NCBI GenBank assembly: GCA_002269645.1
Contig: NIVC01001673.1
Span: 186,001 to 250,000 of the forward strand
From: Macrostomum lignano
Taxonomy: Eukaryota
DNA length: 64,000 bases
Direction of reading: 5' to 3'
The notes beneath the pieces were generated by a model that was given only the letters and a program-made list of their open reading frames with translations, was not told the origin of the DNA and did not search any database. The position numbers were made by a program, and so were the translations under genes. Shown piece after piece: positions 8,949-54,500 of the stretch. Position 1 is the first letter of the stretch. The number at the start of each line of letters is the position of its first letter.

Positions 8949-11900
8949 TCAGTTTAGAAAACGTTTGTATTTTTCTTCAAGCCATGGCGGTACGTCACCC
9001 AGTACCTTGGAACTTCTTCTCCGCAACATCCTCAGCAGTTGCAGATCTTCGCAACTCTCCACAGCCACAACCAGCTCCTGTTCATCAGCATCTTCTCTTT
9101 CCGCAACATCTCGAATCCAGTCTCGGGTGATCGCGTCCATCGGCTCTTCTAGCTCTAGTCGGAGAGCATGGAACAGGGCTTCAAAGTTCATGTACTGTAA
9201 GCCGATGTAATGCTTAACAACTAGAGGAAATACATTGGCAATATTTTTATTTCTAAAAGGAAAAATCGGACGCCGATTAGTGCGAAAGCAAAGCTTCAAA
9301 ACAGAGTCTTGACTCTTCAGGTGCTGCAAAACGAACTCCACAGTCGCTTCGCTGGCTGATCTTTCAGCCGGCCAATCAATGCCTCTACTTGCGCTGAAGC
9401 CCTTGAGACTTTTCAAAATATCCGCTGCAGCGTCTCTTTTACCCAACTGAAGGCAAATAATTGCTCTGACAGACTCTCGCGCTGATCGAGCACAGTCTGG
9501 GAGCTTGTCAATCAAATCCATGAGAGACTCTGCATTGCCGTCCACAGCTGGCAGACGACGCATGGCTTCCAACAGCACGTCATAAATCTCATGGTACTCG
9601 CACTTGGTGGCGCTTGAAACACGCGTGCTATGATGAGCTGGAAGTAGCGAAAGAATTAGGAATGGATTGAAGTAAAATCGACCGAATTCATTGATTGGTT
9701 GCAGACTGTCCTTGAAATAAATTAGCAGCTCAGGCAGCCTAGCGACAATGTCCTTCGCTGCACTTGATGCTTGGTGCAGTGATTCCCGCACACTGTCGGC
9801 TGAGTTTGGGTCCGCGCCTTTTAGGTAGACAGCTGCATCGCTCAAGAAGAAGTGGTCCATAATCCGACAATCCAAATAGCCTGACCTACAGGCGTTCTCA
9901 ACACTGTCAATCAAAATCTGCAGCGAACGTCTCGTGAGATTCACCAGGTTCTCTGATTTCCACTGATCAGGTGGCGTCTCTTCTAGCATACGGAACGTGA
10001 TTGTCTTTGCATGATACGTCCTGAAGCCATTGTGGCAGATTGCCTTTTTGAGTAGCCACTTCAGAATGACAAACATTTGACCCTGTAGAGTGGTCAGATT
10101 TCGTAACAGCCGCCTCTCAAGGAAGCTGGTGCTCACTCGAAGCTGCTCACCGGCCTTACCAGGGGGAGCTGCGTGCACTATGTGACAGGGTGACGAGGCT
10201 GAAGTAACATCGCGCTGGATCGACTGCAGCACGGCTGGGAAGATGTTGGACTTCGCAACTCTGTCTGGCTGCAGTGGAGCAATAGGCGGGTAGCGGCAGA
10301 GGCGATGCGCCGGCACCTCGTCCAAAGTCGGCCTCTGGTTGAACCCCAGATATGAGCGGGCTGGATTCGACGCTGAAATTTTTGGATTGTACTGCTTAGG
10401 TATGTATGCTTGTATGTATGCTTGTCTGATTAATGCTCTATTTCAAAACAATGTAGTAGCGGAGAAAGTGACATCAGCACTCTTACCAAATCCAGAGCAC
10501 AAAATGTGCCCCTTGCAGTACTCTACTGTCCGCTCACTTCTGTCAGCGCACTCGCAAAAGTCTTTCAGGTGAAAGGGTTTTCCATGAGTGAGCCACATCA
10601 CATCAACGTCAGAGTCGAAGTCAGTTCTGCCATCCAGAGTGACCAGGCTGTTGCCCCAGCCTTCAGCGAAGCTGCCTACGACAAAGTACTCGTCCGTATG
10701 ATATCTTTTAAAAAGAATATCTTGAAGAAAATCTGCGGTCGAGCTTTGAAAAACAGCACGGGATTGCACGAAACCCGATTTAGACAGGGCTAAGTGAAGC
10801 AGCTGGCTTAGTTCCTCATCACTGTGCGTCTGTCTGTAGGATGAAAGCAGTGGTAATATATGTTTCACATGCGCTCGAAAATCGGGCCGTTAAGATAAAG
10901 AATTTTAAGTCAGTAGCTCGTAGATGACATGCAGTTTGCACATCGACAAACATCCAGCGAGGGGAAAGTAACTATGGACGTTCCTCGGACGGCACCTAAG
11001 CACGAGCACGCGCCCGAATATGTACTCAGGCACACACGCAGAGCTGTATATCTGCTCTCAGCATCGTCTGTATGTGTATTCTGAAGCTTGAGGGTCGGTC
11101 CACATGAGTGAAAATCGCACGAGCCTTCAGGCCAGCACCTGAGTCCTGAACCTGCGTAATATGGCCCATGCTGCGTGATGTAACCCAAGAAGTGAGCGCG
11201 AGGGTTGGATTCATTCTCCCTCCCAGCTACCCAAAAGTGATCAAATTAGCTATCGAAAATGCAGCACTTACTTTTCAACGTTTATTCCAGAGTCATCCAG
11301 TGACGTGGCAGCATGAAACAGTTCCACAACACGGTCATTCTCAAACTCTTCGGCACATCTCAGACCCTGTTTTAAATAGCTGGCTTGAATGCCATTACGA
11401 ATACAGAACTCGATAATTAACTTGACAGTCTGATAGTGATTGTTTTGTGAAGCAATATCTAAAGGTGTCTTTCCTGCGCCATTTGCACTGGTGACATCGG
11501 CTTGGGCTTTCAAGAGAGACTCGACTACTTGGTAATGCCCTTGCTGACACGCTGCGAATATCGGTGAGCAGCCTTTAGAATCTTGAAGATTTACGTCAGC
11601 TTTTCCTCTGATTAGTGAGTTCACCACCTTTAGATAACCCTGCTCTGAAGCGATGTATAGGGGCGAAAACCCATCAAAATCCTGAAGGTCGACATCAGCT
11701 TGTGCTTTAATGAGCAATTCTACTGCTTGATACCGATCCTCAAGCGAGGCAACGTACAGTGGCGTGGAGCCGATCACTGTTTGAAGATTTACTTCAGCTT
11801 GCGCTCTGACTAGCGACTCAATAACCTTGCAATGACCCTCCTGCGCCGCCATGTAAAGAGGAGAACAATAGGCAAGATCAATATCGGCTTGGGCTTTTAT

Positions 11901-12295
11901 GAGAAGCTTAGCCACTTGATGATGACCGTGCTGCGATGCTGCAAAAAGAGATGATTTTCCCTCACGTGTTTGAAGATTGACATCGACTTGTGCATGAATT
12001 AGTAGCTCGACAATTGAAAAAAAGCCTTGGTATGAAGCTAGATACAAAGCTGAGATGCCGTCGCTGTTTTGCCTATCCAAATCCACCTTTGCTTCAATTA
12101 ATATGATGAGGAGATCTGTCCTTTCTAAGTCGCATGCAATCATTGCCGGCGTAAAATGTTTACCTTTATACACAATAAATGGTCAACACATTTTCCGCCA
12201 GAAATAATACTTTGAACAGCGCCCGAGTTGTTGGAGGCCAGAGCTAAAATCAACTCATCTTCCGTGGGCTCTGCCGAAGGTTCGTTGCCCGGCAT
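8949..12295 (-). pseudogene. ANK-cGLR left copy, apparently disrupted (exons about 12295-11272, 10875-10487, 10372-8949)
   Basis: 1-nt deletion in a T run near 12178 (gaccatttatt vs gaccattttatt), and the exon-2 acceptor reads TTTTCG instead of TTTTAG (position 10877). Otherwise nearly identical protein. The homopolymer lesion could be sequencing error. Confidence 0.6.
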
Positions 12296-12873
12296 TTCAG
12301 CGGGTCACAGGTGTATGTATGGTTGCGGAGAGCTGCTATCTCGACGTTAAGTAACCATTGAGCTCTGGATTCTCTACTCCTGTCCGTATATTTATCATAT
12401 TTATATCCACCTACTGAAGCATGGGTACGAACAACTGCTAGCTACAAAAGGCAGTGATGCGAAAACAACAATAAGTGTGCAGCAGCCCAAACCGCCTGGG
12501 GTAGAAAGACCGAGACGAGAGTCATTAGAGAAGTGCATACAAGCTATCAGCCAGCGTTTAATAATGTTTTGCAACCGTTTGTGTGTCGGGTGAGCCTCAA
12601 CAACTACAATTGGGTGTTGAACTGCCCCACTCACATGCTGCCATAAACTGCCATATACTCGCGTACGCTTGCACTGACATAAAATGCGACTCCTTAAGAG
12701 ACTCTACTTTGGTATGCTAACTTATGGCCATTTCCATTATTCACCCAAGAAATCGTCATGCCTTCCAAAAAACCTAAAATTTAAATTCTTCAGAATGAGG
12801 AACGCAGAGTCCTTGTGAGACTTAATACTCCTAAAGGTATAAGTTGCTCAGCGCAATAGTAAGCGGTTCAATA

Positions 12874-16483: not shown

Positions 16484-16556
16484 GGGGCCGTAGCCCAGTG
16501 GTCAAGTGTGGTGCTCTGATGTGCCAGCGGCCCAGGCTCGATTCCAAGTGCAGTCA
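16484..16556 (+). other. tRNA-like (SINE-head-like) degenerate sequence; mirror about 30637-30709
   Basis: GGGGCCGTAGCCCAGTGGTCAAG (A-box-like) and GGCTCGATTCC (B-box-like) at tRNA spacing, but the D and T stems pair poorly. Confidence 0.35.
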
Positions 16557-19025: not shown

Positions 19026-19621
19026 TTTTAAATTAGGGAGAGCCTTAAAATTACACGTACGAAAAAGTTGTTGTCAAGCCTCGTAAACCGCGTTTACTGC
19101 GCTCAATTCAGTCGAAACCAATACTTGATTCTGTCAGTAGCTTTTTTTGTAAGAAACGATTACTGTACTGTCATTTTGACCCACGGAAGTGGCGAAAAGT
19201 TTTGCTGCAAAAATGTGAAATTGCATCTGCGGCCATCACAGGTTTCTACGAATCCGAGGCTCATCAAACGCTTTGTAGCAGGATGCAACGGCAGATTGCG
19301 AGCTCATCGTGTGTTCAAAAGTATTTCAGCTGATGCGGAACCGTTCAATCCTGGACTTGGCTTTTGATTTCCAATTGGGATCTGGATGCTGAGTGATAAA
19401 AACACCAGGATGAATCTGGGGGCCAGAGGGATCGGGAGAAGTACCCAGCCAATCCCACGGGTGCCCTGGGGAGTTTTCGGATTCCCAGGCACATCTATGA
19501 ATATCTAAACAGAACACTTTTGCTGACAGCTCCTTGCCAAGCCAAACCGAGCTCTGTCCCGCTGGCTGCACTTCTTCAGGCAGAAACCGAATACACCAAG
19601 GGCTGAAGAGACGACTAGGAA

Positions 19622-22103
19622 ATGTCGGCCGGGAAGGCCATGGCGGCGGCCATCGCTGACAGCAGCGCGCACGGCATCAGCCGGGCTGTGGGCGCCCGCT
19701 CGACGACTTTGAAGGTGATGTGGACAGTCCTGTTCCTGCTGTTCCTCGCCCTGTGCTGCAAGAGCGCCTCCACGCTCATCAGCAGGCTCATCAACATCAC
19801 CGTGGTGCGGACTTACGAGTCTGACAAGGTGCCGTTCGAGTTTCCGGACATCTACTTCTGCCCGAGCCTCATCTACTCTGGCAGCATACCCTACACTCTC
19901 AAGGAGGCCGAGGCCAAGGTGGTTAATGATGAAGTTGAGAGGCTGAGCCGGCTATATGACAGGCTGTACTGCAGCAAGAGCGCGGAATTCTGCACCCACG
20001 GAGAGAAGGCCACATTTCGCCGGGTGTCCCGGATCCAGCTGTCCATGCCGGTGCACATCCTCAACCGCTACCTGCTGCAGCAGGAGAACCAGTCCTTCCT
20101 CACCTGGCCCTACGTTCGCTACCAGTCTTACAGCACCAGCAGCAGGTACGCCGCCAGGACTGTCTTCATCCACCCCGACAACCGGATCTGCTACAAGATC
20201 TCGGTGTCCGCGGAGAGCCTGGAGAGCCTCAGCTACAAGCGATCCGTCCTGCTCTCCTGGCTTCTTGTCGATCCGCACTATTCCGATTTCACCTTCACCG
20301 GAGTGGAGGTAAAGCCCATTGTGAACCGGTTCCTCAACAAGAGCGTCCCGTTCCAGAACTGGCAGTCCATAGACGGCTACCACAGCATCACCAGCCTGGG
20401 TTACACCCTGCAGGTGGTGCCAGAGGCACTTATCCATCTCTGATGCACGAAGCCAAGCTGGGCCTGGCCGCCGGCAGGTCCTACCACGTCTCCATCGACA
20501 TGGAGGAGACAGTCCACAGCCACGAGCTCAACGGCAAGTACTGCAACCCCAAGCAGGAAGTTGCTATCTTTCAGAACCAGCTAACCGGCGAAAGGCAGGA
20601 GTTCAAGAGCAGCCAGCGTCTTGCTTCTACACTCAGATGAACCTCCTGCTGCAGAAGGAGTTCCAATTTGTGTTCTCTCTGTACCGAAGCCGTGGAGCCA
20701 GAGAGACGTGCCCAGGTTTGAGAACATGACGGGAGATCGAGATGACGAAGGCCGCCATCGAGAATGTCTCCCTGTACGACGTGAGGAAGTTCATCGACAT
20801 CCACACTCAGCACATCACCGACTATTGCAAGAAGGAACAGCCGTGTGAGTTCACTGAGTACAGCGCGACCTCGACGTCTGTGAAGTGGCCACGGGCGAGC
20901 AGAGCTCTGGCCGACTTCCTTGTCAACGAATACCCCGACTGGTACACCGACATGGGCCGGCCCGCCACCCGCAGGCTGGTGGATCTGTCGAGGCAAATCC
21001 AGTCCGGTGAGTTGTGCTCATGCTCTAGACTGAGGCAAATCCAGTTCGGTGAGTTGTTCTCATGCTCTAGACTAAGGCAAATCCAGTCCGGTGAGTTGTT
21101 CTCATGCTCTAGACTGAGGCAAATCCAGTCTGGTGAGTTGTGCTCATGCTATAGATTGAGGCAAATCCAGTCCGGTGAGTTGTGCTCATGCTCTAGACTG
21201 AGGCAAATCCAGTCCGGTGAGTTGTTCTCATGCTCTAGACTGAGGCAAATCCAGTTCGGTAAGTTGTTCTCATGCTCTAGACTGAGGCAAATCCAGTTCG
21301 GTGAGTTGTTCTCATGCTCTAGACTGAGGCAAATCCAGTTCGGTGAGTTGTGCTCATGCTCTAGACTGAGGCAAATCCAGTTCGGTGAGTTGTTCTCATG
21401 CTCTAGACTGAGGCAAATCCAGTTCGGTGAGTTGTTCTCATGCTCTAGACTGAGGCAAATCCAGTTCGGTGAGTTGTGCTCATGCTCTAGACTGAGGCAA
21501 ATCCAGTTCGGTGAGTTGTTCTCATGCTCTAGACTGAGGCAAATCCAGTTCGGTGAGTTGTTCTCATGCTCTAGACTGAGGCAAATCCAGTTCGGTGAGT
21601 TGTTCTCATGCTCTAGACTGAGGCAAATCAAGACTACCATCAAGGCATCTCTAGGCTCCTGAATCTCTCAGATTGAGTCAGTTTCGTCAGCTTAAGAGCA
21701 CAACTCAGAGAGTAGGTTCACCCTGAGCAGCCGTTGCTTTGCTTTAACCGCAGATAATCACTCCAGCCACACCGAGTCAATGTTCCGGCACTACGTCACC
21801 GAGGCCATGATCGAGGTGTACATCTCCGTGAAGAGCCATCGGTCATCGAGGATTGTCATCGCCTACTCCTACTCGTGGGTGGCCTTCCTGGCTGACATCG
21901 GCGGCCTCCTTGGCCTGTACATCGGCTGCAGCCTGCTGACCCTGTGCGAGCTGCTGGAGCTGGCCTACCACCTGGTGAACGGCGCGGTGGCAGCGCGAAG
22001 GACCGCCAAAAGCCGGAGATGCAACTCTGTGGAGATCCCGGAGGGCCGGCAGCGGCAGGCGGAAAGCGCGGCCCCGGATGTGGGAGCGGCTGAACGCGTT
22101 TGA
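19622..22103 (+). CDS. DEG/ENaC (amiloride-sensitive sodium channel family) subunit, left copy; exons 19622-21006 and 21754-22103
   Basis: Pre-TM1 HG motif (SSAHGI), TM1, FPDIYFC, PCEFTEY..S..WP, TM2 FLADIGGLLGLYIGCS with GxS filter. Phase-1 intron. Several 1-nt indels (about 20420, 20615, 20685, 20733) are corrected by the mirror copy. Confidence 0.88.
20991..21630 (+). repeat. 42-bp tandem array spanning the DEG/ENaC exon-intron junction (15 donor copies); mirror about 25568-26207
   Basis: Unit aggcaaatccagt(c/t)(c/t)g|gtgagttgt(t/g)ctcatgctctagactg, with GT at 21007 + 42n up to 21595. Confidence 0.96.
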
Positions 22104-22549
22104 TGAGGCCGCATCGATTCAATGACAGCTTCTAATGAGTAAAACAGTTCTCATTTCATGCTGGAAAATTTTAGTTAATCAGTAGCAAACAGACTGCTTA
22201 GTGGTCCTTGACTGCATGGCATATCCGATCTCAGAGTATTACACAACCTACGTGATTCTCGCTTTTTAAATCAGCTCTCATGCTACGAGCAAGATTATCT
22301 CCCTAATCCTGAGCACGTGATCTCCGCTGCCGGAGACAGAGTGCTCGGAGTCTCCAAAAAATCGCTTTACTGAAACCTCAGCTCTCAGAGTTCCCGGAGG
22401 TATGCAGATTTAATCTCGCATAGGATTCCCTCATCTCGGTGTGCTGCTGCTTGCATTAATTAATAAAGACATTGTCAAGCATCGCACACTCGGCAGACTT
22501 CTCTTGGAGCTCTATTTTTCCTGCTCAAACACTGGCTGTTGCGACAGAG

Positions 22550-23375: not shown

Positions 23376-23702
23376 NNNNNNNNNNNNNNNNNNNNNNNNN
23401 NNNNNNNNNNNNNNNNNNNNNNNNNNNNNNNNNNNNNNNNNNNNNNNNNNNNNNNNNNNNNNNNNNNNNNNNNNNNNNNNNNNNNNNNNNNNNNNNNNNN
23501 NNNNNNNNNNNNNNNNNNNNNNNNNNNNNNNNNNNNNNNNNNNNNNNNNNNNNNNNNNNNNNNNNNNNNNNNNNNNNNNNNNNNNNNNNNNNNNNNNNNN
23601 NNNNNNNNNNNNNNNNNNNNNNNNNNNNNNNNNNNNNNNNNNNNNNNNNNNNNNNNNNNNNNNNNNNNNNNNNNNNNNNNNNNNNNNNNNNNNNNNNNNN
23701 NN
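23376..23702. other. Assembly gap (327 N) at the symmetry centre
   Basis: Run of N. Bases 23703-23808 have no sequenced mirror partner. Confidence 1.
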
Positions 23703-25094: not shown

Positions 25095-27571
25095 TCAAAC
25101 GCGTTCAGCCGCTCCCACATCCGGGGCCGCGCTTTCCGCCTGCCGCTGCCGGCCCTCCGGGATCTCCACAGAGTTGCATCTCCGGCTTTTGGCGGTCCTT
25201 CGCGCTGCCACCGCGCCGTTCACCAGGTGGTAGGCCAGCTCCAGCAGCTCGCACAGGGTCAGCAGGCTGCAGCCGATGTACAGGCCAAGGAGGCCGCCGA
25301 TGTCAGCCAGGAAGGCCACCCACGAGTAGGAGTAGGCGATGACAATCCTCGATGACCGATGGCTCTTCACGGAGATGTACACCTCGATCATGGCCTCGGT
25401 GACGTAGTGCCGGAACATTGACTCGGTGTGGCTGGAGTGATTATCTGCGGTTAAAGCAAAGCAACGGCTGCTCAGGGTGAACCTACTCTCTGAGTTGTGC
25501 TCTTAAGCTGACGAAACTGACTCAATCTGAGAGATTCAGGAGCCTAGAGATGCCTTGATGGTAGTCTTGATTTGCCTCAGTCTAGAGCATGAGAACAACT
25601 CACCGAACTGGATTTGCCTCAGTCTAGAGCATGAGAACAACTCACCGAACTGGATTTGCCTCAGTCTAGAGCATGAGAACAACTCACCGAACTGGATTTG
25701 CCTCAGTCTAGAGCATGAGCACAACTCACCGAACTGGATTTGCCTCAGTCTAGAGCATGAGAACAACTCACCGAACTGGATTTGCCTCAGTCTAGAGCAT
25801 GAGAACAACTCACCGAACTGGATTTGCCTCAGTCTAGAGCATGAGCACAACTCACCGAACTGGATTTGCCTCAGTCTAGAGCATGAGAACAACTCACCGA
25901 ACTGGATTTGCCTCAGTCTAGAGCATGAGAACAACTTACCGAACTGGATTTGCCTCAGTCTAGAGCATGAGAACAACTCACCGGACTGGATTTGCCTCAG
26001 TCTAGAGCATGAGCACAACTCACCGGACTGGATTTGCCTCAATCTATAGCATGAGCACAACTCACCAGACTGGATTTGCCTCAGTCTAGAGCATGAGAAC
26101 AACTCACCGGACTGGATTTGCCTTAGTCTAGAGCATGAGAACAACTCACCGAACTGGATTTGCCTCAGTCTAGAGCATGAGCACAACTCACCGGACTGGA
26201 TTTGCCTCGACAGATCCACCAGCCTGCGGGTGGCGGGCGGCCCATGTCGGTGTACCAGTCGGGGTATTCGTTGACAAGGAAGTCGGCCAGAGCTCTGCTC
26301 GCCCGTGGCCACTTCACAGACGTCGAGGTCGCGCTGTACTCAGTGAACTCACACGGCTGTTCCTTCTTGCAATAGTCGGTGATGTGCTGAGTGTGGATGT
26401 CGATGAACTTCCTCACGTCGTACAGGGAGACATTCTCGATGGCGGCCTTCGTCATCTCGATCTCCGTCATGTTCTCAAACCTGGGCACGTCTCTCTGGCT
26501 CCACGGCTTCGGGTACAGAGAGAACACAAATTGGAACTCCTTCTGCAGCAGGAGGTTCATCTGAGTGTAGAAGCAAGACGCTGGGCTGCTCTTGAACTCC
26601 TGCCTTTCGCCGTTAGCTGGTTCTGAAAGATAGCAACTTCCTGCTTGGGGTTGCAGTACTTGCCGTTGAGCTCGTGCTGTGGACTGTCTCCTCCATGTCG
26701 ATGGAGACGTGGTAGGACCTGCCGGCGGCCAGGCCCAGCTTGGCTTCGTGCATCAGAGATGGATAAGTGCCTCTGGGCACCACCTGCAGGGTGTAACCCA
26801 GGCTGGTGATGCTGTGGTAGCCGTCTATGGACTGCCAGTTCTGGAACGGGACGCTCTTGTTGAGGAACCGGTTCACAATGGGCTTTACCTCCACTCCGGT
26901 GAAGGTGAAATCGGAATAGTGCGGATCGACAAGAAGCCAGGAGAGCAGGACGGATCGCTTGTAGCTGAGGCTCTCCAGGCTCTCCGCGGACACCGAGATC
27001 TTGTAGCAGAATCCGGTTGTCGGGTGGATGAAGACAGTCTGGCGGCGTACCTGCTGCTGGTGCTGTAAGACTGGTAGCGAACGTAGGCCAGGTGAGGAAG
27101 GACTGGTTCTCCTGCTGCAGCAGGTAGCGGTTGAGGATGTGCACCGCATGGACAGCTGGATCCGGGACACCCGGCGAAATGTGGCCTTCTCTCCGTGGGT
27201 GCAGAATTCGCGCTCTTGCTGCAGTACAGCCTGTCATATAGCCGGCTCAGCCTCTCAACTTCATCATTAACCACCTTGGCCTCGGCCTCCTTGAGAGTGT
27301 AGGGTATGCTGCCAGAGTAGATGAGGCTCGGCAGAAGTAGATGTCCGGAAACTCGAACGGCACCTTGTCAGACTCGTAAGTCCGCACCACGGTGATGTTG
27401 ATGAGGCCTGCTGATGAGCGTGGAGGCGCTCTTGCAGCACAGGGCGAGGAACAGCAGGAACAGGACTGTCCACATCACCTTCAAAGTCGTCGAGCGGGCG
27501 CCCACAGCCCGGCTGATGCCGTGCGCGCTGCTGTCAGCGATGGCCGCCGCCATGGCCTTCCCGGCCGACAT
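25095..27571 (-). CDS. DEG/ENaC subunit, right copy; exons 27571-26192 and 25444-25095
   Basis: Mirror of the left copy with its own 1-nt indels, mostly at 26230 and 26600-27420. Confidence 0.85.
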
Positions 27572-28167: not shown

Positions 28168-29531
28168 CTAACAGGCAGCAGAACAATCGTAAAAATTTAA
28201 CCCGGCAAATCGCCAACCCAAATTTGAGTCCCAGTCAACTGAAGCAGCGGTGGCAATGCAGCTCTCAGTTGTCGAGTGCCCAAGTCCCGCAGTCAGCAGG
28301 TCCTGCACCAGCTGCAGCCCGATCTCCGGCCGGTCCGTCGCCACGAAGTGTCCGGTGCCAATCATCGTCCGGTACCTGATTCGGCCACCCAGGTAGGACC
28401 TCTGGATGCCTCCGATCTGCAGTCCGTAGCCCGGCTTTCTCAGACACCAGAACCAGGGGTCCTGACGGCTGACTGGGTCCGGGGGCAGCCGCTCCAGCAG
28501 CTGCAGCGTCAACCCCACGGGCAGCATGTAGTCCAGGACTCCGGTGTACAACAGCACCGGCACGTTGTGATTCGCTAGGCTCTGAAACTCACCCAGGACG
28601 TCTCGCACAGACTGGATATACTCACTAAACAATGTGTCGTTGCAGATGGTAAAATTCACAGCAAAATTTTCGTTGACGCCAAGAGCTACTCGAGCGTCAG
28701 CGTCGTTCAAGAAGCTCGTGAGACCCGTGGAGTTTAGGTAGAGATAGTTGTCCAGCTGCCCGTCGCTGTAGCACCGCTGGGCGATGTTGTACGGGTTCAC
28801 TCGGCGGGAGTCCTTCAGGAGAATACATGTATATTGCGGCATGGTGCGCTGTTTGTTCTGAAGCATGCAAACAAATTTGAACAGATGATAGAAACTTTGA
28901 TACCGTCTTCATGACACTGGACCCTCTGTACGAGTAGCTGATGCCCATTGCGTCCGTCAGGGCTCTGCGGTGCGATTCAAAGACCGAGTCATTGTACGGC
29001 ATGTGCAGGCCGTTGCCCACGGCGATGCCCTTCAGGTTGATGAGGCCGGGACGGTGCCCGCCGTCGATGATGGCGCTGGCCAGCAGCGGGATGTAGATCC
29101 CCGCGTAGCTCTCTCCCGCGATGTAGAAGGCCCGGCCTCGGTACTCGGGGAACAGGCTGTAGAAGTGGAGCAGCGCTCCCAGGTTCAGCCGCGTGGTCGC
29201 GTTATCGTTGAGCTCGGTCGGGTCGGTGGGTCCGGGCTCGCTCAGGCCGACACCGCTGGGCGAGTCGATGTACAGCACGTTGGCCAGCCGGTTCCACGCG
29301 AAGTCGTTGCGCTCCAGCTCGGCGCGGTCGTTCGCCAGGAACGGCCCGTTCGTCATGAGCAGGCCGCCGACCGAGGAGCCGTTCATCCACAGCACGAGAG
29401 GAGCCGTCGAGGCGTCCACGTGGGAGCTCTCGACCAGCCAGTAGAAGAGGCGCCGGCTGCCGCCGCTGCCGCTGCTGGAGGTCAGGTAGCCCGAGTACTG
29501 GGTGAAGTTCGGGCGGAACAGCAACCGCGGC
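28168..29531 (-). CDS. Serine carboxypeptidase 2, right copy; exons 29531-28904 and 28812-28168
   Basis: Mirror of 17662-19025 with AGESYAG and the same GPGC deletion. Confidence 0.78.
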
Positions 29532-34898: not shown

Positions 34899-37800
34899 AT
34901 GCCGGGCAACGAACCTTCGGCAGAGCCCACGGAAGATGAGTTGATTTCAGCTCTGGCCTCTAACAACTCGGGCGCTGTTCAAAGTATTATTTCTGGTGGA
35001 AAATGTGTTGACCATTTTATTGTGTATAAAGGTAAACATTTTACGCCGGCAATGATTGCATGCGACTTAGAACGGACAGATCTCCTCATCATATTAATTG
35101 AAGCAAAGGTGGATTTGGATAGGCAAAACAGCGACGGCATCTCAGCTTTGTATCTAGCTTCATACCAAGGCTTTTTTACAATTGTCGAGCTACTAATTCA
35201 AGCACAAGTCGATGTCAATCTTCAAACACGTGAGGGAAAATCATCTCTTTTTGCAGCATCGCAGCACGGTCATCATCAAGTGGCTAAGCTGCTCATAAAA
35301 GCCCAAGCCGATATTGATCTTGCCTATTGTTCTCCTCTTTACATGGCGGCGCAGGAGGGTCATTGCAAGGTTATTGAGTCGCTAGTCAGAGCGCAAGCTG
35401 AAGTAAATCTTCAAACAGTGATCGGCTCCACGCCACTGTACGTTGCCTCGCTTGAGGATCGGTATCAAGCAGTAGAATTGCTCATTAAAGCACAAGCTGA
35501 TGTCGACCTTCAGGATTTTGATGGGTTTTCGCCCCTATACATCGCTTCAGAGCAGGGCTATCTAAAGGTGGTGAACTCACTAATCGGAGGAAAAGCTGAC
35601 GTAAATCTTCAAGATTCTAAAGGCTGCTCACCGATATTCGCAGCGTGTCAGCAAGGGCATTACCAAGTAGTCGAGTCTCTCTTGAAAGCCCAAGCCGATG
35701 TCACCAGTGCAAATGGCGCAGGAAAGACACCTTTAGATATTGCTTCACAAAACAATCACTATCAGACTGTCAAGTTAATTATCGAGTTCTGCATTCGTAA
35801 TGGCATCCAAGGCAGCTATTTAAAACAGGGTCTGAGATGTGCCGAAGAGTTTGAGAATGACCGTGTTGTGGAACTGTTTCATGCTGCCACGTCACTGGAT
35901 GACTCTGGAATAAACGTTGAAAAGTAAGTGCTGCATTTTTGATAGCTGATTTGATTACTTATGGGTAGCTGGGAGGGAGAATGAATCCAACCCTCGCGCT
36001 CACTTCTTGGGTTACATCACGCAGCATGGGCCATATTACGCAGGTTCAGGACTCAGGTGCTGGCCTGAAGGCTCGTGCGATTTTCACTCATGTGGACCGA
36101 CCCTCAAGCTTCAGAATATACATACAGACGATGCCGAGAGCAGATATACAGCTCTGCGTGTGTGCCTGAGTACATATTCGCTCAGGTGCTCAGGTGCCGT
36201 CCGAGGAACGTCCATAGTTACTTTCCCCTCGCTGGATGTTTGTCGATGTGCAAACTGCATGTCATCTACGAGCTACTGACTTAAAATTCTTTATCTTAAC
36301 GCCCCGATTTTAGAGCGCATGTGAAACATATATTACCACTGCTTTCATCCTACAGACAGACGCACAGTGATGAGGAACTAAGCCAGCTGCTTCACTTAGC
36401 CCTGTCTAAATCGGGTTTCGTGCAATCCCGTGCTGTTTTTCAAAGTTCGACCGCAGATTTTCTTCAAGATATTCTTTTTAAAAGATATCATACGGACGAG
36501 TACTTTGTCGTCGGCAGCTTCGCTGAAGGCTGGGGCAACAGCCTGGTCACTCTGGATGGTAGAACTGACTTCGACTCTGACGTTGACGTGATGTGGCTCA
36601 CTCATGGAAAACCCTTTCACCTGAAAGACTTTTGCGAGTGCGCTGACAGAAGTGAGCGGACAGTAGAGTACTGCAAGGGGCACATTTTGTGCTCTGGATT
36701 TGGTAAGAGTGCTGATGTCACTTTCTCCGCTACTACATTGTTTTGAAATAGAGCATTAATCAGACAAGCATACATACAAGCATACATACCTAAGCAGTAC
36801 AATCCAAAAATTTCAGCATCGAATCCAGCCCGCTCATATCTGGGGTTCAACCAGAGGCCGACTTTGGACGAGGTGCCGGCGCATCGCCTCTGCCGCTACC
36901 CGCCTATTGCTCCACTGCAGCCAGACAGAGTTGCGAAGTCCAACATCTTCCCAGCCGTGCTGCAGTCGATCCAGCGCGATGTTACTTCAGCCTCGTCACA
37001 CTGTCACATAGTGCACGCAGCTCCCCCTGGTAAGGCCGGTGAGCAGCTTCGAGTGAGCACCAGCTTCCTTGAGAGGCGGCTGTTACGAAGTCTGACCACT
37101 CTACAGGGTCAAATGTTTGTCATTCTGAAGTGGCTACTCAAAAAGGCAATCTGCCACAATGGCTTCAGGACGTATCATGCAAAGACAATCACGTTCCGTA
37201 TGCTAGAAGAGACGCCACCTGATCAGTGGAAATCAGAGAACCTGGTGAATCTCACGAGACGTTCGCTGCAGATTTTGATTGACAGTGTTGAGAACGCCTG
37301 TAGGTCAGGCTATTTGGATGGTCGGATTATGGACCACTTCTTCTTGAGCGATGCAGCTGTCTACCTAAAAGGCGCGGACCCAAACTCAGCCGACAGTGTG
37401 CGGGAATCACTGCACCAAGCATCAAGTGCAGCGAAGGACATTGTCGCTAGGCTGCCTGAGCTGCTAATTTATTTCAAGGACAGTCTGCAACCAATCAATG
37501 AATTCGGTCGATTTTACTTCAATCCATTCCTAATTCTTTCGCTACTTCCAGCTCATCATAGCACGCTTGTTTCAAGCGCCACCAAGTGCGAGTACCATGA
37601 GATTTATGACGTGCTGTTGGAAGCCATGCGTCGTCTGCCAGCTGTGGACGGCAATGCAGAGTCTCTCATGGATTTGATTGACAAGCTCCCAGACTGTGCT
37701 CGATCAGCGCGAGAGTCTGTCAGAGCAATTATTTGCCTTCAGTTGGGTAAAAGAGACGCTGCAGCGGATATTTTGAAAAGTCTCAAGGGCTTCAGCGCAA

Positions 37801-38240
37801 GTAGAGGCATTGATTGGCCGGCTGAAAGATCAGCCAGCGAAGCGACTGTGGAGTTCGTTTTGCAGCACCTGAAGAGTCAAGACTCTGTTTTGAAGCTTTG
37901 CTTTCGCACTAATCGGCGTCCGATTTTTCCTTTTAGAAATAAAAATATTGCCAATGTATTTCCTCTAGTTGTTAAGCATTACATCGGCTTACAGTACATG
38001 AACTTTGAAGCCCTGTTCCATGCTCTCCGACTAGAGCTAGAAGAGCCGATGGACGCGATCACCCGAGACTGGATTCGAGATGTTGCGGAAAGAGAAGATG
38101 CTGATGAACAGGAGCTGGTTGTGGCTGTGGAGAGTTGCGAAGATCTGCAACTGCTGAGGATGTTGCGGAGAAGAAGTTCTAAGGTATTGGGTGACGTGCC
38201 ACCATGGCTTGAAGAAAAATACAAACGTTTTCTAAACTGA
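34899..38240 (+). CDS. Ankyrin-repeat plus cGAS-like (Mab-21/cGLR) nucleotidyltransferase fusion, predicted 945 aa; exons 34899-35923, 36314-36702, 36817-38240
   Basis: About 8 ANK repeats. Phase-2 donor AA|GTAAGT (35924) matches phase-2 acceptor TTTTAG|A (36313). Phase-1 donor G|GTAAGA (36703) matches TTTCAG|CA (36816). Exons sum to 2838 nt with no internal stop. NTase motifs GSFAEG...DSDVDVM and LDEVPA; Mab-21 C-lobe LRVSTSFLERRLL, RTYHAKT, W..ENL, MDHFF. Confidence 0.8.
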
Positions 38241-39102: not shown

Positions 39103-41601
39103 GGGTCTATGAAATTTGCTAGCAGGAAATCTGCTAGCCGAAGTTTGCTAGCGAGAAATTTGCTTGCCGAAATGTGCTAGCCGAAATGTGCTAGCCGAAA
39201 TGTGCTAGCCGAAATGTGCTAGCCGAAATGTGCTAGCCGAAATGTGCTAGCCGAAATGTGCTAGCCGAAATGTGCTAGCCGAAATGTGCTAGCCGAAATG
39301 TGCTAGCCGAAATGTGCTAGCCGAAATGTGCTAGCCGAAATGTGCTAGCCGAAATGTGCTAGCCGAAATGTGCTAGCCGAAATGTGCTAGCCGAAATGTG
39401 CTAGCCGAAATGTGCTAGCCGAAATGTGCTAGCCGAAATGTGCTAGCCGAAGTTTGCTAGCCGAAGTTTGCTAGCCATCCGCTAGCCGAAATCTGCTAGC
39501 CGAAATGTGCTAGCCGAAATTTGCTAGCCGAAATCTGCTAGCGATAATCTAACCAAAACCGGCGAGCAGCAATTTACGAAGTTGTAATTTGCTAGAGACA
39601 TTTTTTCTTGTCCAATTTCGCAAGAAACTTTGCAGGACTTATCATGCATGACAAATAAATTTGCGTTTTTCGCTCTAATGACTCTCTTTGTCGTGCTTAT
39701 TAGCAGTGATCTGCAAATTGCAATATATAATAATAATTGCAGCCTGCATTGTTGTATCGTAATATAATGCAATTAAAAATTACTAAATCAGAAATTTCTT
39801 TGTAGCTAGCACTCGTATGACAAGAAGTTGTTTTGTTTTCCCGCTCTCGGTAGTCAGAGTAAATTAAGAAGGCAATCTGTTGTGGGGACGACTTAATCTG
39901 GACGACTTAATCTGCCACCTAGCCTTCGCCGTGGGTTCTCGTACATGTACGTGTTAAAACGCAATCAGTAGATGACGTCATAGACAAAAAGAAAATAAGA
40001 TTTAGGTTTTAACGTAGGTGGATTAACGTAGGGCCAAACCCATAGAGTTGTAATGAGCAAAGGCAGCGCTAAAGAATAAATAAAAAAGAACGAAAGAAGG
40101 CGAAGTAAGCCGCGAGAGCATGCAGCTTGATTGTCAAGTGAAAGTGATTCAATAATCGACTCCGAGCTAACACTATTGAATAAAGTAAATATATTGCATC
40201 CATGATCACAGGGTAAGAGCTTGTGGGCCACACCTGCATAGAGTTTTTGCTTGCTTGTACACAGTGCCGTAAGCGATGGAAAATATCTATACATTAACAA
40301 TACATATAGCTATAGTAAATTGTACCTTGGACAATTTGTAAATTGTATGCTAAAGTACTGTATATGCTAAAACTGCACTTGGAAATCGTCAAAATCATTT
40401 ATATTTTTTGTCCTATTTTACTCGTAGACATTTGATGTTTTAGCATTATCAGCTGTAAGGCCGTAGTTTAGGTAGCTCAGGCAGCTGTAGTTCAGGTAGT
40501 TAAATTTAAACTTATCTATACACACAACTTTCAGTCTTAATGGCTGATAGTGGCAGTATATGGTATATAAGTTATATATTTACTCGTACGAATCAAAGCA
40601 GCTCAAATCGGAATCAAAACACAGCAAACAACATGCAACAGCTACGAGAGCAAGGCAGCTAGCAAAATCCTCGCTAGCAAAATTCCTGCTAGCAAACTTC
40701 AGCTAGCAAACTTCGGCTAGCAAACTTCGGCTAGCACATTTCGGCTAGCACATTTCGGCTAGCACATTTCGGCTAGCACATTTCGGCTAGCAGATTTCGG
40801 CTAGCACACTTCGGCTAGCAAACTTCGGCTAGCACATTTCGGCTAGCACATTTCGGCTAGCACATTTCGGCTAGCACATTTCGGCTAGCACATTTCGGCT
40901 AGCACATTTCGGCTAGCACATTTCGGCTAGCACATTTCGGCTAGCACATTTCGGCTAGCACATTTCGGCTAGCACATTTCGGCTAGCACATTTCGGCTAG
41001 CACATTTCGGCTAGCACATTTCGGCTAGCACATTTCGGCTAGCACATTTCGGCTAGCACATTTCGGCTAGCACATTTCGGCTAGCACATTTCGGCTAGCA
41101 CATTTCGGCTAGCACATTTCGGCTAGCACATTTCGGCTAGCAGATTTCGGCTAGCACATTTCGGCTGGCAAACTTTGGCTAGCAGATTTCGGCTAGCACA
41201 TTTCGGCTAGCACATTTCGGCTAGCACATTTCGGCTAGCACATTTCGGCTAGCACATTTCGGCTAGCACATTTCGGCTAGCACATTTCGGCTAGCACATT
41301 TCGGCTAGCACATTTCGGCTAGCACATTTCGGCTAGCACATTTCGGCTAGCACATTTCGGCTAGCACATTTCGGCTAGCACATTTCGGCTAGCACATTTC
41401 GGCTAGCACATTTCGGCTAGCACATTTCGGCTAGCACATTTCGGCTAGCACATTTCGGCTAGCACATTTCGGCTAGCACATTTCGGCTAGCACATTTCGG
41501 CTAGCACATTTCGGCTAGCACATTTCGGCTAGCACATTTCGGCTAGCACATTTCGGCTAGCACATTTCGGCTAGCACATTTCGGCTAGCAGATCTCGTAC
41601 T
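39103..41601. mobile_element. Foldback-like non-autonomous insertion with inverted arrays of a 14-bp unit and a 12-bp flanking direct repeat
   Basis: ccctcggtaact at 39091-39102 and 41602-41613, single copy at the empty site 8108-8119. (gctagccgaaatgt)n at about 39113-39543 and its reverse complement at about 40660-41590. AT-rich non-coding core of about 1.1 kb. Confidence 0.85.
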
Positions 41602-46620: not shown

Positions 46621-48019
46621 GTCTGATTCAACGATCTCTAGACTTAAAGGCTCCGCTCCCAGAGCAGACGGTCAGTTCCCCATCCCGTAATGGCAGTTTT
46701 GGATGGCCCCCCGCTGTGAGGACTTCGCAACAGCAGGTTTTCCCGGTTTTAATTTACTTCAGTTGCCAACTGAATTTTAGGAACCAGTGTTCATTGTGTG
46801 CGGCTGGTTTTACTTTTACTTGAACAAAGCGATTGCAAGCAACTCTGACCATCTGCTTACAGTAACGGAGCAAAAACACAGCAATTAACCATCAACCCCT
46901 ATTGCGAGCGGACGAATCAAGTCTAGCCATTTGGGTATTAACAAATTTGACACAGTCAAAGCTGTCAGGGTTAAAATCTAATTCCGATGCAATGGCTGAC
47001 ATCTAAGAGTCATACAGCAGGTACCCGGCAGGTGTCAGCGTCCACAAGCCAAGAATGAATTTTCACCCTGTTCCGTTGAATCCTGGTGAAAGCGCACACG
47101 TGGATCTCCACATTGTTGCTTAGTAGCAAGGTTCGGACTCAGTCTTCTGCCAACCTGAGCCCCTACTCGGCAAGTGGCTGAGCACCCATTTTCTGGTGAG
47201 CTTGCAGACATCGGATTTTCTGAGCTCCTTCTTTCCTGGGGTGATTAAGCCGCGAGATGAATGCCGGCAGAGACAATGGCGCTCGGGTGATTGACTCGCG
47301 CCCAGCCCAGCAGCTTAGAGGCCGATCCCAGCTGAGCTCGGGCGTGGATCAATCGATCAGCCGAGCTCGAGGACATTAAAGTCGGGCGATTCCGACCGGC
47401 CCGGTCCCGCGGGGCCTGAGATCTCTGCCGCCTCCTGAGCAGAGCGGGCCGCGGCCAAGACAGCCCGGAGAGATTTTCTCTATTAAAGGCGCGGCACCGC
47501 TGCAGGTGAGCTGTTGACTACTCTCTATTAAAGAGGGAGGCACTTAATCCTCTACCCCCCACTCCGGTTCGAAAGACCGGCCAAAAAGTCGAATAGGAGA
47601 TTGGGAACAGTTGGATAATCTTCTTCCTCCCTGGACAAGGCGCCGCCTGCCGCCCCGCATGGACCGCCGACCCAGATGGGAGATTGGGCACCCACCTGAG
47701 CCTCCTGGAAGTCTTGAGAAAGAGAATCTGGAGAGCCAACTCGTGTTCAAATTCCCATTGTGCATGCAGATTGGGACTGCAGAAGATTCAGAGTAATCTG
47801 GCTTAAGCTGTTTATTAAATAATTTTTTGCATCAAAAACATTTCCACCAGTGCAAAAATATTTCAGTTTAGTTATTGTTTTTTCCCCAAATTTCTGCAGA
47901 CTCTGGTAAAGGCTCCTAAAAGGGAGCGGACTCTGAGCTCTACCGCAGATCCCCTTGCGGCTTGGCCGCTGGTCTCGGGGACGCCCGGGATTCGATCCGC
48001 AGCCGCAATCAAGTCGGGG

Positions 48020-48085
48020 CTCTCCTATTGGCCGAGAGGGGCCCGACTCTCCCGGACTCAAATCGAGAGCCAATTTATACGGCCC
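48020..48085 (+). promoter_or_regulatory. Candidate Olig proximal promoter (ATTGG, CCAAT and a TTTATA-like element)
   Basis: ATTGG at 48027-48031, CCAAT at 48070-48074 and TTTATA at 48074-48079, 100-150 bp upstream of the ATG. Retained in the left copy (about 1575-1630). Motif-only evidence. Confidence 0.3.
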
Positions 48086-48174
48086 GAACCGGAACAACTG
48101 GTTGAGATCGGCAGGGCTGAGACACTGCTCAGAAGTAGCTTGTGCTTCAGAAGTCCCGACAATCCGCAACGAAA

Positions 48175-49112
48175 ATGGCTGGGCGCGCAGCGGCAGCGAG
48201 CCTGCAGCAGGCATTCGAGCAGCAGAAGCAGCAGCTGCGGCGCCTCGGACTCGAACCTGCGCACTCCGGCGAAGACGAAGAAGAGGAGGAGGCGGCAGCG
48301 GAGCGCCGGGACGAGGAGATGCCGGGCGGCGCGAGCGGAGGTGGCAAGAAGACCGAAGGCAGGGAGCTGAGGTGAGTCTGAGAAGCTTCGAGTCTGATGC
48401 TGCATCATTCGAGATGCTGTATTTACATGTATATCAATCATATCATGCCGCCGGACCCCCCGTCAGGCTGAAAATCAACAGCCGCGAGCGCAAGCGGATG
48501 CACGACCTGAACTCGGCGCTGGACGGCCTCCGGGAGGTGATCCCGTACGCCACGGGGCCGTCAGTGAAGAAGCTGTCGAAGATCGCCACCCTCCTGTTGG
48601 CCAAGAACTACATCCTGATGCTGCAGAGCTCGCTTGATGAGATGAAGAAGCTGCTGTCAGAGGTCTACAAGCACCGGGGCGGCAGCGGCGGCGGGACTGG
48701 GGAGTCACCGCGGTCGACGCCAACTTCGCCGTCCGACTTGACGACTCCAGCCGCAGCAGCCGGGGCACCCGCAGTGACAGCGGCGCCACCGCCGCCGCCA
48801 CCAGCGCCGACAACGTCAGCGACACCAATGCCTTCGACGCCCACCCCGGCGATGCTGCTGCCGCAGCCGCCAGCGATGCCGACGCACTCGCAGCAGCAGC
48901 AGCAGCCGTTTGCCGGAGGCCTGTTCCCACCGCACCTGCTGTACCAGCAGCACCCGCTGCACTGCTGGTGCCCGGACTGCTCGCTGCAGCGCCATCACCT
49001 GCGACAGGCGGCTGCAGCTGCCGCGGCCGTGGCTGCCGCCGCTGCGACAGCCGCGCCGTCTTCGGCCAGTGCAGCGGGCGGCAAAGCAACCGGAAGCTGC
49101 TTCAGCGACTGA
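48175..49112 (+). CDS. Olig: Olig-class bHLH transcription factor, right copy; exons 48175-48371 and 48467-49112
   Basis: ATG at 48175, donor GTGAGT at 48372, acceptor CAG ending 48466. The split Arg codon AG|G restores the basic region. Confidence 0.9.
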
Positions 49113-51515: not shown

Positions 51516-54500
51516 TTAAGCGACCAGCACGCAGGAGCCGCCGACCTTCTTGATCTTCTCCTCGGCCTTCTTGCTGAAGAATTTCGCCTTCACGATGACC
51601 GGCACCTTCGGCATGTTGCCCTTGCCCAGCACCTTGAAGAAGCCCTGCGGGTGAGCACAAAATACAATAGGATACAGCGATTGTTGCGTGTCATTCCATG
51701 GTGTGAAACAGTTTTGAGGGCCGATCCCATGGTGTGGGGCAGTTTGAAGGCAGATTCCATGGTGTGGGACAGTTTGAAGGCAGATTCCATGGTGTGAAAC
51801 AGTTTTGAGGGCCGATCCCATGGTGTGGGACAGTTTGAAGGCAGATTCCATGGTGTGGGACAGTTTGAAGGCAGATTCCATGGTGTGGGACAGTTTGAAG
51901 GCAGATTCCATGGTGTGGGGCAGTTTGAAGGCAGATCCCATGGTGTGGGACAGTTTGAAGGCAGATTCCATGGTGTGGGACAGTTTGAAGGCAGATTCCA
52001 TGGTGTGGGACAGTTTGAAGGCAGATTCCATGGTGTGGGACAGTTTTGAGGGCCGATCCCATGGTGTGGGACAGTTTGAAGGCAGATTCCATGGTGTGGG
52101 ACAGTTTGAAGGCAGATTCCATGGTGTGGGACAGTTTGAAGGCAGATTCCATGGTGTGGGACAGTTTGAAGGCAGATTCCATGGTGTGGGACAGTTTTGA
52201 GGGCCGATCCCATGGTGTGGGACAGTTTGAAGGCAGATTCCATGGTGTGGGACAGTTTGAAGGCAGATTCCATGGTGTGAAACAGTTTTGAGGGCCGATC
52301 CCATGGTGTGGGACAGTTTGAAGGCAGATTCCATGGTGTGGGACAGTTTGAAGGCAGATTCCATGGTGTGAAACAGTTTTGAGGGCCGATCCCATGGTGT
52401 GGGACAGTTTGAAGGCAGATTCCATGGTGTGGGACAGTTTGAAGGCAGATTCCATGGTGTGAAACAGTTTTGAGGGCCGATCCCATGGTGTGGGACAGTT
52501 TGAAGGCAGATTCCATGGTGTGGGACAGTTTGAAGGCAGATTCCATGGTGTGGGACAGTTTGAAGGCAGATCCCATGGTGTGGGACAGTTTTGAGGGCCG
52601 ATCCCATGGTGTGGGACAGTTTGAAGGCAGATTCCATGGTGTGGGACAGTTTGAAGGCAGATTCCATGGTGTGGGACAGTTTGAAGGCAGATTCCATGGT
52701 GTGGGACAGTTTTGAGGGCCGATCCCATGGTGTGGGACAGTTTGAAGGCAGATTCCATGGTGTGGGACAGTTTGAAGGCAGATTCCATGGTGTGGGGCAG
52801 TTTGAAGGCAGATTCCATGGTGTGGGACAGTTTGAAGGCAGATTCCATGGTGTGAAACAGTTTTGAGGGCCGATCCCATGGTGTGGGACAGTTTTGAGGG
52901 CCGATCCCATGGTGTGGGACAGTTTGAAGGCAGATTCCATGGTGTGGGACAGTTTGAAGGCAGATTCCATGGTGTGGGACAGTTTGAAGGCAGATTCCAT
53001 GGTGTGGGACAGTTTGAAGGCAGATTCCATGGTGTGGGACAGTTTGAAGGCAGATTCCATGGTGTGGGACAGTTTTGAGGGCCGATCCCATGGTGTGGGA
53101 CAGTTTGAAGGCAGATTCCATGGTGTGGGACAGTTTTGAGGGCCGATCCCATGGTGTGGGACAGTTTGAAGGCAGATCCCATGGTGTGGGACAGTTTGAA
53201 GGCAGATTCCATGGTGTGGGGCAGTTTGAAGGCAGATTCCATGGTGTGGGACAGTTTGAAGGCAGATCCCATGGTGTGGGACAGTTTGAAGGCAGATTCC
53301 ATGGTGTGGGGCAGTTTGAAGGCAGATTCCATGGTGTGAAACAGTTTTGAGGGCCGATCCCATGGTGTGGGACAGTTTGAAGGCAGATTCCATGGTGTGG
53401 GGCAGTTTGAAGGCAGATTCCATGGTGTGGGGCAGTTTGAAGGCAGATTCCATGGTGTGAAACAGTTTTGAGGGCCGATCCCATGGTGTGGGACAGTTTG
53501 AAGGCAGATTCCATGGTGTGGGGCAGTTTGAAGGCAGATTCCATGGTGTGGGGCAGTTTGAAGGCAGATTCCATGGTGTGGGGCAGTTCGAAGGCAGATT
53601 CCATGGTGTGAAACAGTTTTGAGGGCCGATCCCATGGTGTGGGACAGTTTGAAGGCAGATCCCATGGTGTGGGACAGTTTGAAGGCAGATCCCATGGTGT
53701 GGGACAGTTTGAAGGCAGATTCCATGGTGTGGGGCAGTTTGAAGGCAGATTCCATGGTGTGAAACAGTTTTGAGGGCCGATCCCATGGTGTGGGACAGTT
53801 TGAAGGCAGATTCCATGGTGTGGGGCAGTTTGAAGGCAGATTCCATGGTGTGGGGCAGTTTGAAGGCAGATTCCATGGTGTGAAACAGTTTTGAGGGCCG
53901 ATTCCATGGTGTGGGACAGTTTGAAGGCAGATCCCATGGTGTGGGACAGTTTGAAGGCAGATTCCATGGTGTGGGACAGTTTGAAGGCAGATTCCATGGT
54001 GTGGGGCAGTTTGAAGGCAGATTCCATGGTGTGAAACAGTTTTGAGGGCCGATTCCATGGTGTGGGACAGTTCGAAGGCAGATTCCATGGTGTGGGGCAG
54101 TTTGAAGGCAGATTCCATGGTGTGGGGCAGTTTGAAGGCAGATTCCATGGTGTGGGACAGTTTGAAGGCAGATCCCATGGTGTGGGACAGTTTGAAGGCA
54201 GATCCCATGGTGTGGGACAGTTTGAAGGCAGATTCCATGGTGTGGGGCAGTTTGAAGGCAGATTCCATGGTGTGAAACAGTTTTGAGGGCCGATCCCATG
54301 GTGTGGGACAGTTTGAAGGCAGATCCCATGGTGTGGGACAGTTTGAAGGCAGATTCCATGGTGTGGGGCAGTTTGAAGGCAGATTCCATGGTGTGGGACA
54401 GTTTGAAGGCAGATTCCATGGTGTGAAACAGTTTTGAGGGCCGATCCCATGGTGTGGGACAGTTCGAAGGCAGATTCCATGGTGTGGGGCAGTTTGAAGG

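Follow-up and report, generated by a model that had tools for sequence, protein, structure and literature searches.

We analyzed a 64,000-nucleotide stretch of the Macrostomum lignano genome (GenBank assembly GCA_002269645.1, contig NIVC01001673.1, positions 186,001 to 250,000 of the forward strand; hereafter the window) and characterized a three-exon gene on its + strand, at 34899-38240, that reads in a single frame. The account that we favor, with somewhat better than even confidence, is that this transcribed gene encodes an ankyrin (ANK) repeat array, a divergent nucleotidyltransferase (NTase) of the cGAS/Mab-21 fold and a family-specific C-terminal domain, and that the product would be a sensor enzyme of the cGAS-like receptor (cGLR) type. 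Membership of the cGAS/Mab-21 superfamily is close to certain, and judged from its sequence the protein has about an even chance of making a nucleotide signal. The gene is an uncharacterized paralogue of an ANK-cGLR architecture that was already catalogued for M. lignano in 2023 (Li et al. 2023, PMC9980059; this source is cited throughout from portions of its text and tables).

Gene structure and the first splice junction

A first-pass annotation, made from the letters of the sequence, had proposed that three open reading frames (ORFs) join through two GT-AG introns into a 945-aa product with junctions at 35923/36314 and 36702/36817. Translation of the joined segments 34899-35923, 36314-36702 and 36817-38240 gave a 945-codon frame without a stop, both introns have GT-AG ends, and the second junction was upheld. 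A protein search identified the locus, at 100% identity, as GenBank PAA65214.1 (‘hypothetical protein BOX15_Mlig003740g1’, M. lignano, 931 aa), in which the ANK and NTase parts are annotated as a single coding sequence, independently of the first-pass model. The Mlig_3_7 GenBank models were generated from a genome-guided transcriptome assembly of RNA-seq data with StringTie/TACO and TBONE (PMC5730564), and transcript-level evidence thus supports a single mRNA with both the ANK and the NTase exons. The identical three-exon layout was found in a paralogue with 57% identity (P0002, from locus L001), whose second intron interrupts the same codon in the same phase (SPGY|ASRP, compared to CSGF|ASNP here). 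The first-pass reading was also correct in that the ANK ORF (34899-35927) ends in a TAA (35925-35927) lying within the GTAAGT donor, and in that the NTase ORF has no ATG of its own, exon 2 being without an in-frame ATG upstream of the GS motif. In view of the annotation, the intron conservation and the absence of a start codon we rejected the possibility that ANK and NTase are separate genes.

The proposed first junction and the product length had to be revised. PAA65214.1 reads ...INVEK|QTHSDEEL, placing the start of exon 2 at 36356, 42 nt downstream of 36314, and 14 residues of the 945-aa model (AHVKHILPLLSSYR) are missing from the annotated 931-aa protein. In P0002 the first acceptor lies 4 residues ahead of the SDNDLSQQLH motif, at a position equivalent to 36356, and in the AlphaFold2 (AF2) model the 14 extra residues form the sole N-terminal stretch with a predicted local distance difference test score (pLDDT) below 50. 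From the sequence of PAA65214.1 and the acceptor position in P0002 we rejected 36314 as the main acceptor. Probably 36356 is the main acceptor, with 36314 at most a minor in-frame alternative, and the 35923/36314 junction probably lies within the intron. Residue numbers throughout refer to the 945-aa model and not to the annotated 931-aa protein.

Assignment of the nucleotidyltransferase

Single-sequence evidence does not justify the cGLR label, and deeper evidence supports it. A family profile built from 12 sequences matched mouse cGAS (E=3e-5) across the KYL..SYHxKT helix. Against 1.84 billion representatives the same profile recovered 85 family members at E<1e-30, followed by a tail of proteins aligned over the NTase C-lobe; all eight tail proteins that were sampled, a bivalve protein among them, cleared the Pfam cut-offs for Mab-21 and Mab-21_C, and an annelid protein was an additional direct match of the profile. 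Comparison of the family alignment with Pfam-positive Mab-21 proteins by hhalign gave a probability of 99.85% (E=6e-31) and paired GSFAEG with GS..EG, SDVDVM with SDxDxM and LDEV with D.V.A.

The 603-aa region comprising the NTase and the C-terminal domain was modeled with AF2 at a mean pLDDT of 80.8 and a predicted template-modeling score (pTM) of 0.79. The top 19 matches of this model in a Foldseek search of the PDB were all members of the cGAS/cGLR/Mab-21 family (E from 8.7e-6 to 1e-2), including Sp-cGLR1 (8gjy, 8.7e-6), cGAS (4k98, TM 0.52), MB21D2 (7lt1), MAB21L1 (5eom) and MiD51 (4nxu); the TM scores, up to 0.52, are normalized by target length, and the structural alignments to characterized cGLR and cGAS proteins run at 11-19% identity. 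The best bacterial CD-NTase match (CdnG, 7ljn) reached only E=0.1 and ranked under all the animal Mab-21 structures, ruling out a bacterial CD-NTase (CBASS) as the closest match. No OAS, CCA-adding or PAP family protein was matched among the profile and Foldseek results. The profile, hhalign and model-based searches together bear out the cGAS/Mab-21-type NTase, fold included, that had been proposed from its motifs.

The closest structural match, Sp-cGLR1 from Stylophora pistillata, shares 19% identity with the protein over 238 aligned columns and has no counterpart of the C-terminal domain; it is a stand-alone dsRNA sensor producing 3'3'-cUA, unlike the ANK-fused protein described here. Vertebrate cGAS has the bilobed Mab-21 NTase fold and the catalytic pattern in common with it at 11-15% identity, and no match to the Zn-thumb or DNA-binding surfaces of cGAS was detected in our protein. 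Where vertebrate cGAS has a disordered basic N-terminal tail the M. lignano protein has the ANK array, and it carries the C-terminal domain in addition. MAB21L1/2, MB21D2 and MiD51 have the same fold, whereas the protein here starts with ANK repeats and has its catalytic residues intact. Computed isoelectric points (pI) were 8.14 for the NTase core, 7.14 for the NTase with the C-terminal region and 5.89 for the whole protein; nucleic-acid-sensing cGLRs are described as having a pI above 8.5 and a basic nucleic-acid-binding groove (Li et al. 2023, PMC9980059).

The nearest non-Macrostomum relatives with a named source are bivalve and annelid proteins. Mercenaria mercenaria XP_053407825.1 (P0126) belongs to the alignment of 17 Pfam-type Mab-21 proteins used with hhalign (A3), which shares GS..EG / SDxDxM / D.V.A with the family, and the annelid protein is Lamellibrachia satsuma KAI0227343.1 (P0118; direct profile match, E=2.4e-15). 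These lophotrochozoan Mab-21 proteins clear the Pfam Mab-21 thresholds, unlike PAA65214.1. They lack an ANK array, and their C-terminal extension is long, partly TPR and unrelated to the C-terminal domain of the M. lignano protein.

Conservation of the active site

The catalytic set consists of G409-S410, D431, D433 and D489. Every motif named in the first-pass annotation was found in the sequence: GSFAEG at 409-414, DSDVDV at 429-434, LDEVPA at 488-493 and YHAKT at 591-595. In the hhalign comparison G409-S410, D431-V-D433 and D489 align to the invariant S/D/D/D columns of Mab-21 proteins. We compared the site among 40 family representatives, as low as 20% identity to the query, and found the glycine in 40/40, the serine in 39/40, D431 in 39/40, D433 in 36/40 and D489 in 34/40; no representative lacks the YHxK lysine of Mab-21_C. 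A few paralogues (P0019, P0074, P0082, P0093 and P0107) have degenerate sites. The retention of the catalytic residues in most representatives and their loss in a few suggests that the site is under selection in most, not all, of the family.

The acidic residues whose loss marks the MAB21L1/2-type class are all present. The conserved site argues against an inactive MAB21L-like role as far as residues can, without proving activity. The first-pass reading of intact catalytic motifs stands, with the residues conserved in 34-40 of 40 representatives; a cyclic nucleotide would be a putative product.

A cluster of His and Cys residues was also observed between the DxD motif and the C-lobe (H444, C449, C451, C497 and C534-H535; encoded at 36618-36641, 36891-36893 and 37002-37007). 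These residues are invariant or near-invariant in the paralogues (C451 in 40/40) and are located elsewhere than the cGAS Zn-thumb. Their pattern could be that of a candidate zinc site.

The ankyrin array and the C-terminal domain

ANK arrays are typically protein-binding. In the ANK region of the protein, Pfam gave Ank_2 at E=4.8e-62 and, over 7 stretches, Ank at E=1.4e-42; the matches to Ank_4 and Ank_3 likewise exceeded their cut-offs. Counted from the sequence, the array holds about 8-9 repeats, in agreement with the roughly eight of the first-pass annotation.

The Mab-21 alignment obtained with hhalign stops near residue 689, leaving 255 aa. This remainder had been described as a helical domain of about 240 aa, a description that the model replaces with a separate alpha/beta domain of about 11 helices and four to five short strands, predicted with a pLDDT of 88.9 and a pTM of 0.88 when modeled alone with AF2. 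It carries the motifs FxFHPFLILP, LPDCA, DSAWKFCF and NFxAL. The pTM of the two-domain model suggests a fixed packing arrangement between this domain and the NTase.

Attempts to relate the C-terminal domain to known proteins gave no significant match. Its profile found nothing significant in the PDB, the best being a designed helical protein at E=0.19; Foldseek against the PDB gave a best E of 0.28, with TPR-like fragments at TM ≤0.38 (normalized by query length), and against BFVD a best E of 0.81; when the C-terminal extension of the other invertebrate Mab-21 proteins was compared with it by hhalign, the probability was 0.2%. A word-indexed protein search with the domain returned three proteins, all from M. 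lignano, and the matches confined to the domain in the family profile and word-indexed searches were few, short M. lignano proteins. One fragment (P0024) bears the UniRef name ‘Terpenoid synthase’, which the PDB, BFVD, hhalign and word-indexed searches do not support. The most economical guess for the role of the domain is regulation, oligomerization or ligand binding.

The M. lignano family and earlier reports

The paralogue search revealed a large expansion, with at least 85 clusters when grouped at 50% identity; the orphan C-terminal domain is common to all of them, and most sampled members have ANK arrays. All family members whose source was looked up are from M. lignano. The architectures comprise the NTase and C-terminal domain alone (some of these may be partial models), ANK followed by NTase and C-terminal domain, very long forms, and the NTase and C-terminal domain followed by ANK and then a caspase (P0082; Peptidase_C14, E=2.7e-25). 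The expansion has so far been seen in M. lignano alone; its module of NTase and C-terminal domain occurs with ANK arrays and, in one branch, with a caspase.

Two observations on individual paralogues are recorded here. The caspase branch includes P0082 (PAA59752.1) and P0186 (PAA80948.1), each with the NTase and orphan C-terminal module, ANK and caspase, and with a degenerate NTase site (D-M-N, E-S); judged from their domain order, these are possible sensor-protease fusions. The P0002 paralogue occurs as a tandem pair of near-identical ANK-cGLR genes at 3001-8161 and 16935-22442 of its locus; the gene called there (3001-22445) covers both copies and does not translate to the query, and the model may be chimeric.

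The suggestion that ANK-Mab-21 fusions may already be catalogued proved correct. Li et al. 2023 surveyed about 3,000 cGLRs, some of which carry ankyrin or TPR modules, and reported ANK fusions among coral cGLRs, making ANK-cGLR a recognized architecture; according to them, nematodes and most platyhelminths possess Mab21-like proteins and no other members, and several M. lignano PAA accessions appear with Ank_2 in their Table S2 (PMC9980059). Five M. lignano proteins were cloned for their biochemical screen (#89-93 of Table S3; PAA86972.1, PAA45980.1, PAA57558.1, PAA93208.1 and PAA68676.1), as constructs that start shortly before the NTase core, without the ANK regions, and were tested with nucleic-acid ligands only (PMC9980059). 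The five clearly belong to the same family as PAA65214.1, sharing GSFAEAWGNSL...DADVDV, LKTYH(A/V)KT, F(N/H)PF.L(L/F)P, LPDCA and, at the N-terminus, Ank_2, and PAA45980.1 falls in a cluster (P0060) that the family profile recovered full-length. PAA65214.1 is a different paralogue from these five and was not found in the portions of the Li et al. tables that were examined, where none of the five is given an activity, a ligand or a description of its C-terminal domain. A literature search with the identifier BOX15_Mlig003740g1 found no paper mentioning it, and a search for M. lignano with cGAS or STING found nothing specific.

Weighing the sensor-enzyme account and its alternatives

In the proposed role as a sensor enzyme of the cGLR type, a protein or other non-nucleic-acid partner would be bound by the ANK array and perhaps by the C-terminal domain too; binding would turn the NTase on, and the activated NTase would turn nucleoside triphosphates into a nucleotide second messenger for some receptor. 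Several results weigh against this account. A direct Pfam scan of the single protein passed only ANK families, so that the strong Ank matches were accompanied by Mab-21_C (PF20266) at 14.8 bits, under its cut-off of 24.1, and by no match to the Mab-21 N-domain (PF03281), and phmmer with the 603-aa NTase and C-terminal region against the PDB returned nothing relevant, a chance beta-galactosidase at E=1.1. Confidence in the 603-aa AF2 model is lowest in the catalytic loops (pLDDT <50 at residues 71-75, 85-87 and 138-142 of that model), and the use of the ANK array as the sensing input, like the autoinhibitory and innate-immune roles put forward in the first-pass annotation, is hypothetical. A survey of the ORFs in the 64-kb window found no STING-like gene, as the first-pass annotation had noted, and no other obvious signaling partner. 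Both cGAS and STING are reported absent from Schistosoma (PMC4117786) and Schmidtea (PMC13563047). In the portions consulted of Li et al. 2023 (PMC9980059), the 15 active enzymes are of insect, anemone, mollusc, hydra and coral origin, with none from M. lignano.

MiD49/51 are mitochondrial membrane-anchored receptors. That our protein is, like them or MAB21L1/2, a non-enzymatic scaffold or adaptor, keeping the fold, making protein contacts through its ANK and C-terminal domains and giving no nucleotide signal, we consider unlikely. Such a role would agree with the presence of MAB21L1 and MiD51 among the structural matches and with the reported absence of STING from the other flatworms examined (PMC4117786, PMC13563047), and the degenerate sites in P0019, P0074, P0093, P0107 and the caspase-fused P0082 (D-M-N, E-S) imply that the fold is usable without catalysis within the family. 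The catalytic residues are nevertheless kept here and in 34-40 of 40 divergent paralogues, whereas Mab21L1/2/3 have no predicted functional active site according to the parts of Li et al. consulted (PMC9980059). The position of the five cloned M. lignano relatives outside the 15 active enzymes speaks for a scaffold, albeit weakly, because the constructs were ANK-deleted and the ligands were nucleic acids only (PMC9980059).

An active NTase with another chemistry, either the synthesis of OAS-like linear 2'-5' oligonucleotides or the nucleotidylation of a protein or RNA recruited by the ANK array, appears distinctly improbable. The G-S / D-x-D / D site is common to the whole Pol-beta-type NTase superfamily, and the strong divergence from characterized cGLRs, the protein-binding habit of ANK arrays and the lack of a known canonical receptor in flatworms all leave room for it. 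The nearest structures and profiles, however, are all cGAS/cGLR/Mab-21, with no match to OAS, CCA-adding or PAP proteins; the nearest named relatives outside Macrostomum are the bivalve and annelid proteins, and the eight sampled distant matches, the bivalve protein included, clear the Pfam Mab-21 thresholds. We regard it as very improbable that the fusion is an artefact of annotation or assembly, in which separate ANK and NTase genes were joined or a decaying duplicate lies in a misassembled palindrome. The gene does sit within an inverted duplication of about 49 kb centered on a 327-N gap, its twin copy is frameshifted in exon 1, and the Mlig_3_7 assembly is redundant (PMC5730564). Against this, the ANK-intron-NTase-intron layout recurs at a second, independent locus of the family and dozens of annotated paralogues share it. 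Exon 2 lacks a start codon ahead of the GS motif, the reading frame of the + strand copy is uninterrupted, and the gene and its twin differ by 16 synonymous and 9 non-synonymous changes. The sensor-enzyme account remains the one that we prefer.

Genomic context

The inverted duplication takes up the first 49.5 kb of the window: 132-23375 recurs in opposite orientation as 23809-49516, on the other side of the gap at 23376-23702. Identity between the arms is 99.1% across the inner 15.3 kb and 93-98% farther out, and every gene in the duplication, the ANK-cGLR gene included, is present twice. The duplication could be either a real palindrome or an artefact of this redundant long-read assembly. 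The twin of the gene is annotated as 880-aa models starting at Met52 (BOX15_Mlig003740g3/g4), and its exon 3 equals P0034 (PAA65213.1/PAA76687.1, BOX15_Mlig003740g4/g3) at all residues but the start codon of the ORF. Divergence between gene and twin is 4.4% in intron 1 and 0.6-1.3% in the exons; if the duplication is real, this pattern, with the substitution counts given above, is what constraint on the coding sequence would produce. Outside the window, the same 252-kb contig holds another copy of 931 aa (g2).

The neighboring ORFs that could be assigned (serine carboxypeptidase S10, DEG/ENaC channel and basic helix-loop-helix (bHLH) proteins; Table 1) have no evident tie to nucleotide signaling. 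A 3.8-kb satellite at 51693-55535 (30-bp unit, 127 copies, 91% matches) contains ORFs of 1178-1314 aa in all three minus-strand frames, which have no Pfam match and are not genes. Arrays of a 14-bp satellite (GCTAGCACATTTCG) fill most of about 2.5 kb at 39111-41590, a stretch that the right arm of the palindrome has and the left arm lacks. A 42-bp tandem repeat of 15 copies (20990-21629 and 25569-26208) gives rise to a 306-aa ORF, over 10 residues of which a weak ‘DRHyd-ASK’ Pfam match was obtained that is most likely spurious.

Table 1. Coordinates of the ANK-NTase gene and of other features in the window
Feature	Position	Strand	Description
Exon 1	34899..35923	+	Start codon, about 8-9 ANK repeats, linker; residues 1-341 plus 2 nt; identical to the PAA65214.1 N-terminus
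Intron 1	35924..36355	+	GT...AG, as annotated; alternative in-frame acceptor of the first-pass model at 36313/36314
Exon 2	36356..36702	+	NTase N-terminal lobe; G409-S410 at 36513-36518, D431 at 36579-36581, D433 at 36585-36587
Intron 2	36703..36816	+	GTAAGA...TTTCAG; splits the A codon after CSGF
Exon 3, first part	36817..37472	+	Remaining Mab-21/cGAS core; D489 at 36867-36869; Mab-21_C helix KWLLKK..YHAKT
Exon 3, second part	37473..38240	+	Family-specific C-terminal alpha/beta domain, 255 aa (37473-38237), plus TGA stop
Inverted twin of the whole gene	8949..12296	-	98.5% identical; 1-bp deletion in exon 1, opposite 35015
Serine carboxypeptidase S10 exons, DEG/ENaC (ASC) channel fragment and bHLH protein ORFs	17669-19025 (mirror 28168-29524), 4747-5457, 19622-20443, 47955-49112 (mirror near 331-1198)	+	
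Retroelement fragment ORF	62066-63979	-	RVT_1 E=3e-17, RNase_H E=3e-11; runs toward the window end

Significance

The locus contributes a clean gene model, a corrected splice junction, evidence of active-site conservation and a fold assignment, and not a new class of protein. M. lignano is an early-branching, genetically tractable flatworm. The usual view is that flatworms have lost cGAS and STING (PMC4117786, PMC13563047), and M. lignano, with its large ANK-cGLR expansion, is an exception among the platyhelminths. A bolder proposal, to which we give little credence, is that the expansion is a flatworm-specific, STING-independent repertoire in which the ANK array and the orphan domain, instead of a nucleic-acid groove, read non-nucleic-acid ligands and the output is a new nucleotide signal or, on the pattern of the caspase-fused paralogues, a direct coupling to a cell-death protease. 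If active, the M. lignano proteins would reveal the form that cGLR signaling takes in a lineage possibly without the canonical receptor, and also how the enzyme is changed by ANK input and by an orphan domain at its C-terminus.

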